This document shows positions 1,493 through 2,286 of a stretch of DNA of 11,979 bases, piece by piece. The DNA lies in the NCBI RefSeq assembly GCF_006345805.1, contig NW_021826705.1, positions 1 through 11,979 of the forward strand, read 5' to 3'. The stretch comes from Octopus sinensis. Its lineage: Eukaryota. Both the position numbers and the translations under genes were made by a program. The notes under the pieces are model-generated. The model did not search any database. It was given only the letters and a program-made list of their open reading frames with translations, and had not been told where the DNA came from. How positions within the stretch are numbered: the stretch's first letter is position 1; every line of letters starts with the position of its first letter.

Positions 1493-1679
1493 ACTACAAT
1501 ATGTAGCGGCGGTAAATCAACATGTTGTTCTGAGACTTAACCTAAGAACTTTTTTTTTTGGATATAATTGGGTTACTCAGATGTGCTTGTGTTGTTCGCT
1601 TCCGCTGTTTTCCAGAGGCTTCTGTGAGTATCTCACTTATATTCTCTCATAAGCTTAACTGAAGACGAACGAACCCTTA
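1493..1679 (+). repeat. 187-bp direct repeat, copy 1 (putative long target-site duplication)
   Basis: actacaatatg...gaacgaaccctta is repeated at 2100-2286 with 2 substitutions and no indels. Confidence 0.95.
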
Positions 1680-2099
1680 TTTAAGGCGGCGAGCTGGCAG
1701 AAACGTTAGCACGCCGGGAGAAATGCGTGGCCGTATTTCGTCTGCCGTTACGTTCTGAGTTCAAATTCCGCCGAGGTCGACTTTGCCTTTCATCCTTTCG
1801 GGGTCGATAAATTAAGTACCAGTTGCGCACTGGGGTCGATGTAATCGACTTAATCCCTTTGTCTGTCCTTGTTTGTCCTCTCTGTGTTTAGCCCCTTGTG
1901 GGTAATAAAGAAATAGGTATTTCACCTGCCGCTACGTTCTGAGTTCAAATTCCGCTGAGGTCGACTTTGCCTTTCATCCTTTCGGGATCGATAAATTAAG
2001 TACCAGTTGCGCACTGGGGTCGATGTAAACGACTTAATCCCTTTGTCTGTCCTTGTTTGTGCTCTCTGTGTTTAACCCCTTGTGGGTAGTAAAGAAATA
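1680..2099 (+). mobile_element. tRNA-derived SINE family C with a tandemly duplicated 184-bp body
   Basis: Head ggcggcgagctggcagaa with a B-box-like GAGTTCAAATTCC. The body ggtcgactttgcctttcatcctttcggggtcgataaattaagtacc resembles the Meta/MESC-type SINE core (recall). Units are 1732-1915 and 1916-2099 and both end aaagaaata. Confidence 0.85.
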
Positions 2100-2286
2100 A
2101 CTACAATATGTAGCGGCGGTAAATCAACATGTTGTTCTGAGACTTAACCTAAGAACTTTTTTTTTTGGATATAATTGGGTTACTCAGATGTGCTTGTGTT
2201 GTTCGCTTCCGCTGTTTTCCAGAGGCTTATGTGAGTATCTCACTTATATTCTCTCGTAAGCTTAACTGAAGACGAACGAACCCTTA
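2100..2286 (+). repeat. 187-bp direct repeat, copy 2
   Basis: Begins immediately after the SINE tail and is 185/187 identical to 1493-1679. Confidence 0.95.

Follow-up and report, generated by a model that had tools for sequence, protein, structure and literature searches.

Target-site duplications (TSDs) longer than 100 bp have been recorded only at L1 insertions, where they are rare (PMC5223499). In HeLa cells, under 10% of human L1 insertions carry TSDs of this size, and in nucleotide-excision-repair-deficient cells such TSDs are the majority and extend up to kilobases; these large duplications have been ascribed to a second nick that lies far off and may be unrelated (PMC5223499, which summarizes the cultured-cell work of Gilbert 2002/2005 and Symer 2002). 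L1 TSDs have also been given as "several to several hundred nucleotides" (PMC1291365), and a survey of LINE clades reported lengths of 7–18 bp for L1 and mostly 7–15 bp for the RTE clade, with RTE values not exceeding 13 bp in the animal sets analyzed (PMC6007223). In that survey, 30 of the 53 copies of C. elegans RTE-1 had TSDs within the searched 10–49-bp range, and the RTE target signature was described as a TSD whose first base, T or A, matches the repeat of the tail and which has a T-stretch ~10 nt upstream (PMC6007223). A further class of insertions, the template-switch chimeric retrocopies, consists of a full-length 5′ part joined directly, in the same orientation, to a 5′-truncated 3′ part, with one pair of repeats flanking the whole (PMC2104539).

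Here we describe a locus that combines features of both systems. It lies within a window of 11,979 nt, by which we mean the whole stretch of DNA that was analyzed, and it consists of a SINE-like insert (SINE C) between two 187-bp copies of the same flanking sequence. We consider it probable that the locus is the footprint of a retrotransposition event, best explained by target-primed reverse transcription (TPRT) in which the second strand broke 187 bp away from the first. Like the large-TSD L1 insertions, it would then hold a TPRT insert, a duplication of hundreds of base pairs of unique target DNA and a second break far from the nick. The L1 cases come from engineered, human tumor or repair-deficient cells and show TTTT/A sites and poly(A) tails; unlike them, the SINE C locus involves a SINE-like element that is germline-fixed, has a tail that is not poly(A), and sits at a non-L1 target site, and the genome is invertebrate-looking. 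Most likely, retrotransposition here had an infrequent result of a kind described before, and no new mechanism is needed.

A 187-bp Direct Repeat Flanks the Insert

A repeat search of the window returned a 187-nt direct repeat at 99% identity, with copy A to the left of the insert at 1493–1679 (the putative 5′ TSD copy) and copy A′ to the right at 2100–2286 (the putative 3′ TSD copy), at an offset of 607 nt. Base-by-base comparison showed that 185 of the 187 positions are identical, in full agreement with the coordinates and the two differences given in the original prediction; the mismatches fall at 1622 (C versus A) and 1649 (A versus G, a CpG-type change). The edges of the repeat are sharp, and extension is impossible on either side, with C1492 set against A2099 on the left and T1680 against C2287 on the right. 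The composition of the 187-mer is mixed (68 T, 47 A, 36 C, and 36 G) and not low-complexity, and identity at 185 of 187 positions across such a sequence far exceeds chance similarity. The flank had also been said not to look repetitive, and BLAST at a permissive threshold identified A and A′ and no third copy of the 187-mer in the window and all fetched loci. No copies of the flanks or of the 187-mer came up when a protein index and the viral, metagenome, and prokaryote genome collections were scanned. An 890-aa chimeric query, built from all six-frame open segments of the joined flanks together with the other SINE frames, had no protein-index match, and exact protein look-up of the nearest large open reading frame (2901–3347) gave no record.

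The insert occupies 1680–2099 (420 nt) and touches both copies of the repeat, as expected from the earlier claim that the SINE ends abut the repeats without filler; at most one base, T1680, could count as filler, and it may be an extra, untemplated nucleotide. With L and R denoting the DNA to the left and right of the repeats, no short TSD was found at either of the simple insertion sites (CCCTTA versus CACGGT for A|R, and GTAACC versus ACTACA for L|A), which leaves the 187-mer as the only candidate TSD. Its length is outside the usual ~7–20 bp (up to 30) and far beyond the usual range of every LINE clade surveyed (PMC6007223). The giant-TSD layout that had been proposed is what the locus displays, namely a SINE-like element, with the termini of its family, bracketed by two copies of an otherwise unique flank that run in the same orientation, and having no short TSD. 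A simple tandem duplication of 607 bp was rejected, because another SINE or one more copy of A should then remain, and neither is present.

An older 187-bp tandem duplication might have come first, with the SINE inserted later, precisely at the A|A′ junction, and local tandem duplications do exist in the window (7500–8412). Such a history would need the SINE to hit one particular position in ~374 and to insert without a TSD of its own, and no partial third copy or array was found, which makes it highly improbable in our judgment.

Assemblies are known to contain falsely duplicated haplotypes, and we also considered whether a heterozygous SINE insertion, or gap-filling, could have caused two haplotype versions of the 187-bp flank to be stacked in tandem, in which case the mismatches between A and A′ would be heterozygous SNPs. 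Both junctions lie exactly at SINE termini, the window contains no Ns or gaps, and the novel junction GAAATA|ACTACAAT would require either read support or a blind zero-length join; moreover, an artefact implies a true insertion without any short TSD. Set against these points, the divergence between A and A′ (~1%, with a 95% interval of 0.1–3.8%) is within the range of heterozygosity, and a perfect 63-nt repeat at 7638/7900 is another suspiciously exact local repeat in the window. On balance, we regard an assembly artefact as quite unlikely.

The Insert Comprises a Full-Length and a Truncated SINE C Monomer

The insert had been taken for a single 420-bp SINE, but this did not hold. Tandem Repeats Finder and our repeat search detected a 184-nt period inside it, and the insert resolves into a full-length monomer, M1 (1680–1915, forward strand, 236 nt), one G at 1916 that by sequence comparison and alignment has a counterpart in neither monomer, and a 5′-truncated monomer, M2 (1917–2099, forward strand), which corresponds to M1 positions 54–236 and is missing the first 53 nt. 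Over these 183 nt the monomers differ at nine positions (95% identity). M2 retains the 3′ tail and a B-box-like motif; the motif, GAGTTCAAATTCC, was read from the sequence of the forward strand at 1757–1769 in M1 and at 1941–1953 in M2, and it resembles the consensus of the pol III B box, GGTTCGANNCC.

When the 68-aa open frame of SINE C was searched against a protein index, it led to one ENA metagenome contig (L001, 543 bp), which holds a monomeric SINE C copy between unrelated flanks and is the sole external copy recovered. M1 aligns to it over 235 nt at 87% identity, from TTAAGGCGG to GAAATA, and the counterpart of the B-box-like motif in this copy is GTTCGAATTCC. Three-way alignment of M1, M2, and the L001 copy placed the start of the family at TTAAGGCGG and its end at GAAATA. 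Because this alignment fixes the family ends, the insert can be seen to meet the two repeat copies at its own ends, apart from at most one extra base, T1680; in other words, same-orientation target repeats directly flank an insert whose ends match those of an independent family copy within 1 nt.

Judged from these alignments, SINE C is evidently a genuine dispersed repeat family. Neither ARAGORN nor two Rfam scans gave a tRNA match for its head, so the label "SINE", as we apply it, depends on dispersal, size, the B-box-like motif, and the A-rich tail. The window contains no SINE C copies besides the insert, and patterns drawn from SINE C and the 187-mer retrieved no family copies from the viral, metagenome, and prokaryote DNA collections, the matches in contigs L002–L004 covering 20–49 nt of the core motif only. 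A 49-nt stretch from the center of SINE C (…TCGATAAATTAAGTACCAG…) recurs at 80% identity in unrelated JGI metagenome contigs (L002, 2787–2835; L003, 4693–4741). This recurrence suggests that SINE C may carry a conserved central SINE domain common to other animals, possibly one resembling the Nin-DC/Deu-like domains.

The existence of a free SINE C copy also weighs on a reading of the whole 794-bp unit as a TRIM-like miniature LTR element with 187-bp terminal repeats and a SINE-derived interior. TRIM elements are recognized by LTRs of the form TG…CA, a 4–5-bp TSD, and an interior bounded by a PBS and a PPT, and SINE-related TRIMs exist (PMC10886601). The unit is shorter than 1 kb, its terminal direct repeats are of LTR-like length, and the right repeat is immediately preceded by a purine-rich stretch (GTAGTAAAGAAATA). 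However, the repeats run AC…TA and not TG…CA, the unit is without a TSD because the flanking 4–5 nt differ (TAACC versus CACGG), and there is no PBS beside the left repeat. In addition, the interior is found in L001 as a free SINE without these repeats, and no second 187-mer locus appeared in anything searched. A TRIM-like element thus fails on every defining feature and is largely refuted, and we give it next to no chance.

We compared the architecture of the insert with that of the chimeric retrocopies described above and found the same arrangement, in that M1 is full length, M2 begins at position 54, the two are joined through a single G (GAAATAG|GTATTTCACC), and A and A′ flank the whole. 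As in the fungal chimeric retrocopies, where a GCC motif has been reported at switch sites, the truncation point of M2 follows …GGCC; unlike in those retrocopies, both components belong to the same family, and the flanking repeats measure 187 bp as opposed to 10–20 bp (PMC2104539). The extra base, G1916, was possibly gained, untemplated, at a template switch. Since both components are of one SINE family, the dimer might also stem from a dimeric master copy, which would give the same look as a template switch within a single event, or from a second insertion into the tail.

The dimeric structure is equally relevant to a scenario in which two independent SINE C insertions, one allele carrying its copy at L|A and the other at A|R, underwent unequal recombination to yield L-A-SINE-A-R with no leftover SINEs. 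This would reproduce the outer geometry and explain the missing short TSDs. SINEs account for ~11.6% of the Octopus vulgaris genome (PMC13282606), and the window itself, with a very abundant SINE and much (TA)n around it, has an octopus-like appearance. What it predicts, however, is one hybrid monomer, and not a full monomer followed by a G and a monomer truncated at position 54, and it requires two insertions of the same family and orientation 187 bp apart; we see only a very slim chance that the locus arose this way.

The Monomers Diverged Before the Flank Was Duplicated

To place these events in order, we compared the number of changes in the monomers with that in the repeats. At 7–8 of the nine positions that distinguish M1 from M2, the L001 copy sides with M1, so that ~7 changes over 183 nt are private to M2. 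A and A′ together show two changes in 374 nt, significantly fewer than M2 (Fisher p = 0.007), and a direct comparison of M1/M2 (9/183) with A/A′ (2/187) gave p = 0.03. Because the changes between M1 and M2 exceed those between A and A′, the divergence of the monomers predates the duplication of the flank, and by these counts the flank duplication is the youngest event at the locus. The older divergence of M1 and M2 fits the copying-in of two different RNAs or of one old dimer. Duplication of a monomer in situ was rejected as the origin of the dimer, M2 being too diverged.

Proposed Course of the Insertion

In the favored explanation, TPRT would begin with a bottom-strand nick at 1492/1493, the left edge of the 187-bp segment, which would prime a non-LTR (LINE-type) reverse transcriptase. 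We infer the position of this nick (5′-ATTGTAGT^GGTTAC-3′) from the junction between the SINE tail GAAATA and A′, together with the left edge of A. The enzyme would reverse-transcribe one SINE C RNA from its 3′ end as far as position 54, a stretch of 183 nt, to give M2. It would then jump, with the addition of one base, to a second SINE C RNA, entering at its 3′ end and copying its whole length to give M1. The top strand would break 187 nt from the first nick, and not at the usual 7–20 bp, at a point equivalent to 2286/2287 on the forward strand (5′-CCCTTA^CACGG-3′), where the right edge of the repeat lies. Fill-in of the two long 3′ overhangs would then produce one copy of the 187-bp segment to either side of the insert. 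The distant second break may have been made by the enzyme itself or may have been supplied by a chance lesion.

The first-nick site contains no L1-type TTTT/AA and bears no resemblance to the RTE target, and neither of the two putative nick sites resembles a known LINE endonuclease target. This lends some support to a LINE-endonuclease-independent origin, in which the DNA suffered a double-strand break with staggered ends, or a pair of chance nicks separated by 187 bp (as might happen at a replication fork), and SINE cDNA was captured during repair, with overhang fill-in duplicating the 187 bp. In line with such an origin, distant second nicks have been regarded as perhaps unrelated lesions or as replication or repair ends (PMC5223499). 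Break-repair capture is harder to reconcile with the intact 3′ end of the family, which is joined straight to the target as in ordinary TPRT, and the atypical site is weak evidence in its favor because the partner LINE may have a target preference of its own. We judge this route, which would be a version of the favored process that does without the LINE endonuclease, to be unlikely.

LINE Fragments and the Proposed RTE Link

The original prediction had named an RTE-type enzyme as a plausible driver of the wide stagger, and C. elegans Rte-1 is reported to carry a flanking repeat of ~200 bp. The tail of SINE C is non-poly(A) and A-rich, a trait shared with RTE LINEs and the SINEs they mobilize (PMC6007223), and the first base of the TSD, an A, is compatible with this tail. 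No T-stretch of the RTE kind lies ~10 nt ahead of the TSD (the upstream sequence being GGGGGACTTGTAACC|A), although a single site makes for a weak test. Comparison of SINE C with the LINE 3′ fragments of the window (3716–4720 and 8591–9090) showed no significant 3′ similarity to these elements. The unlike tails, the absent T-stretch, and the contrast between RTE TSDs of mostly 7–15 bp and the 187 bp seen here leave an RTE-type driver unsupported.

RTE LINEs had themselves been reported in the window, and this claim stood in part, in that LINE 3′ fragments are present but their assignment to the RTE clade hangs on a (TGA)n tail. Such a tail has been described as typical of RTE (PMC1852546), RTE elements with microsatellite tails are found in octopus (PMC9115989), and the (TGA)n tail of the window fragments suggests RTE. 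The fragments lie at 3722–4700 (reverse strand), 8600–9077 (reverse strand), and 11955–11979, and have a 3′ UTR with 66–67-nt tandem repeats. In the first fragment, the C-terminal open reading frame is frameshifted between the pieces at 4489–4692 and 4301–4510. A protein search with the LINE fragments found one homologue, 65% identical, in an ENA contig (L005), and a Pfam search of the same fragments gave a sub-threshold AT-hook only.

A Single Event or a Property of the Family

We also asked whether long flanking duplications accompany other SINE insertions, as would be expected if the family were a systematic generator of local duplications. No long flanking repeats were found at the other SINEs of the window (211–501, 1054–1240, 5744–6017, 6112–6300, 6741–7189, 7963–8376, 10325–10922, and 11157–11731), and the flanks of the L001 copy (141 and 171 nt) share no direct repeat longer than 6 nt. 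The idea of a systematic generator is not supported by these comparisons, with the L001 copy telling weakly against a family-wide effect, and the evidence, thin as it is, points to what looks like a one-off event. It is very unlikely, in our estimation, that SINE C or its partner LINE routinely breaks the second strand about one nucleosome repeat (~190 bp) away, making 100–200-bp duplications across the genome, with M1-G-M2 as a propagating subfamily.

If real, the locus would provide a clean, natural, germline-fixed case of retrotransposition duplicating a few hundred base pairs, an outcome known mostly from human cell-culture assays. Events of this kind would be a minor source of small segmental duplications, and the flanking repeats could later recombine and delete the insert. 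As a lone case it leaves the general understanding unchanged, and it is frequent occurrence within the family that would matter.

Other Repeats and Features in the Window

A local tandem-like repeat with units of roughly 190–260 bp occupies 7500–7962 and 8377–8412. Within it, the perfect 63-nt direct repeat (7638–7700 and 7900–7962) is bordered by flanks that are only 77–87% identical, for which gene conversion and an assembly effect are both possibilities. A SINE of an abundant family (7963–8376) is inserted at the start of the next tandem-like unit, and because 7638–7735 represents a paralogous uninterrupted site, the TSD of this SINE can be limited to ~2–4 bp. Two further copies of the abundant SINE, at 10326–10695 and 11326–11713 (reverse strand), contain a tandemly duplicated head unit of ~185 nt, with 93.7 and 94% identity between the units. 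The duplicated units are separated by a short (TA)n and are ~5–6% diverged, much like M1 and M2. Tandem full or partial SINE dimers seem to be common in the window; they may arise when a SINE inserts into a microsatellite tail or by template switching.

Rfam returned matches to microRNAs (mir-297, mir-466, mir-3149, mir-1277, and others) at 897–1060, 1348–1441, 5351–5634, and 11499–11567, all below gathering scores, and we rejected them as low-complexity false positives on (TA)n/(TG)n microsatellites. Three loci (3680–3718, 5351–5389, and 10153–10191) share the same end structure, an (ACAG/ACAC)n run followed by TTTTATATA, with loosely similar upstream sequence (…AATTTGA…GG…), and they are probably members of a further family of short repeats. 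At ~2712 and ~9720 there are heads that resemble CTAGCA..CCCG..TTGCCGGGT. A possible first coding exon was noted on the forward strand at 9574–9630, where ATGGAAGAGGAAGAATTAGCGAATTTCAATATCAACGGAGTCTTCATCGAT is followed by GTAAGT and preceded by a T-rich tract. Finally, a third SINE-like family (GGCCC(A)GTGGTTAGGGCAGCGGACTCG…) is present at 1054–1240 and 6112–6300, the two copies being 86% identical over ~180 nt before they diverge completely, and a related fragment at 11061–11156 (reverse strand) interrupts another SINE.
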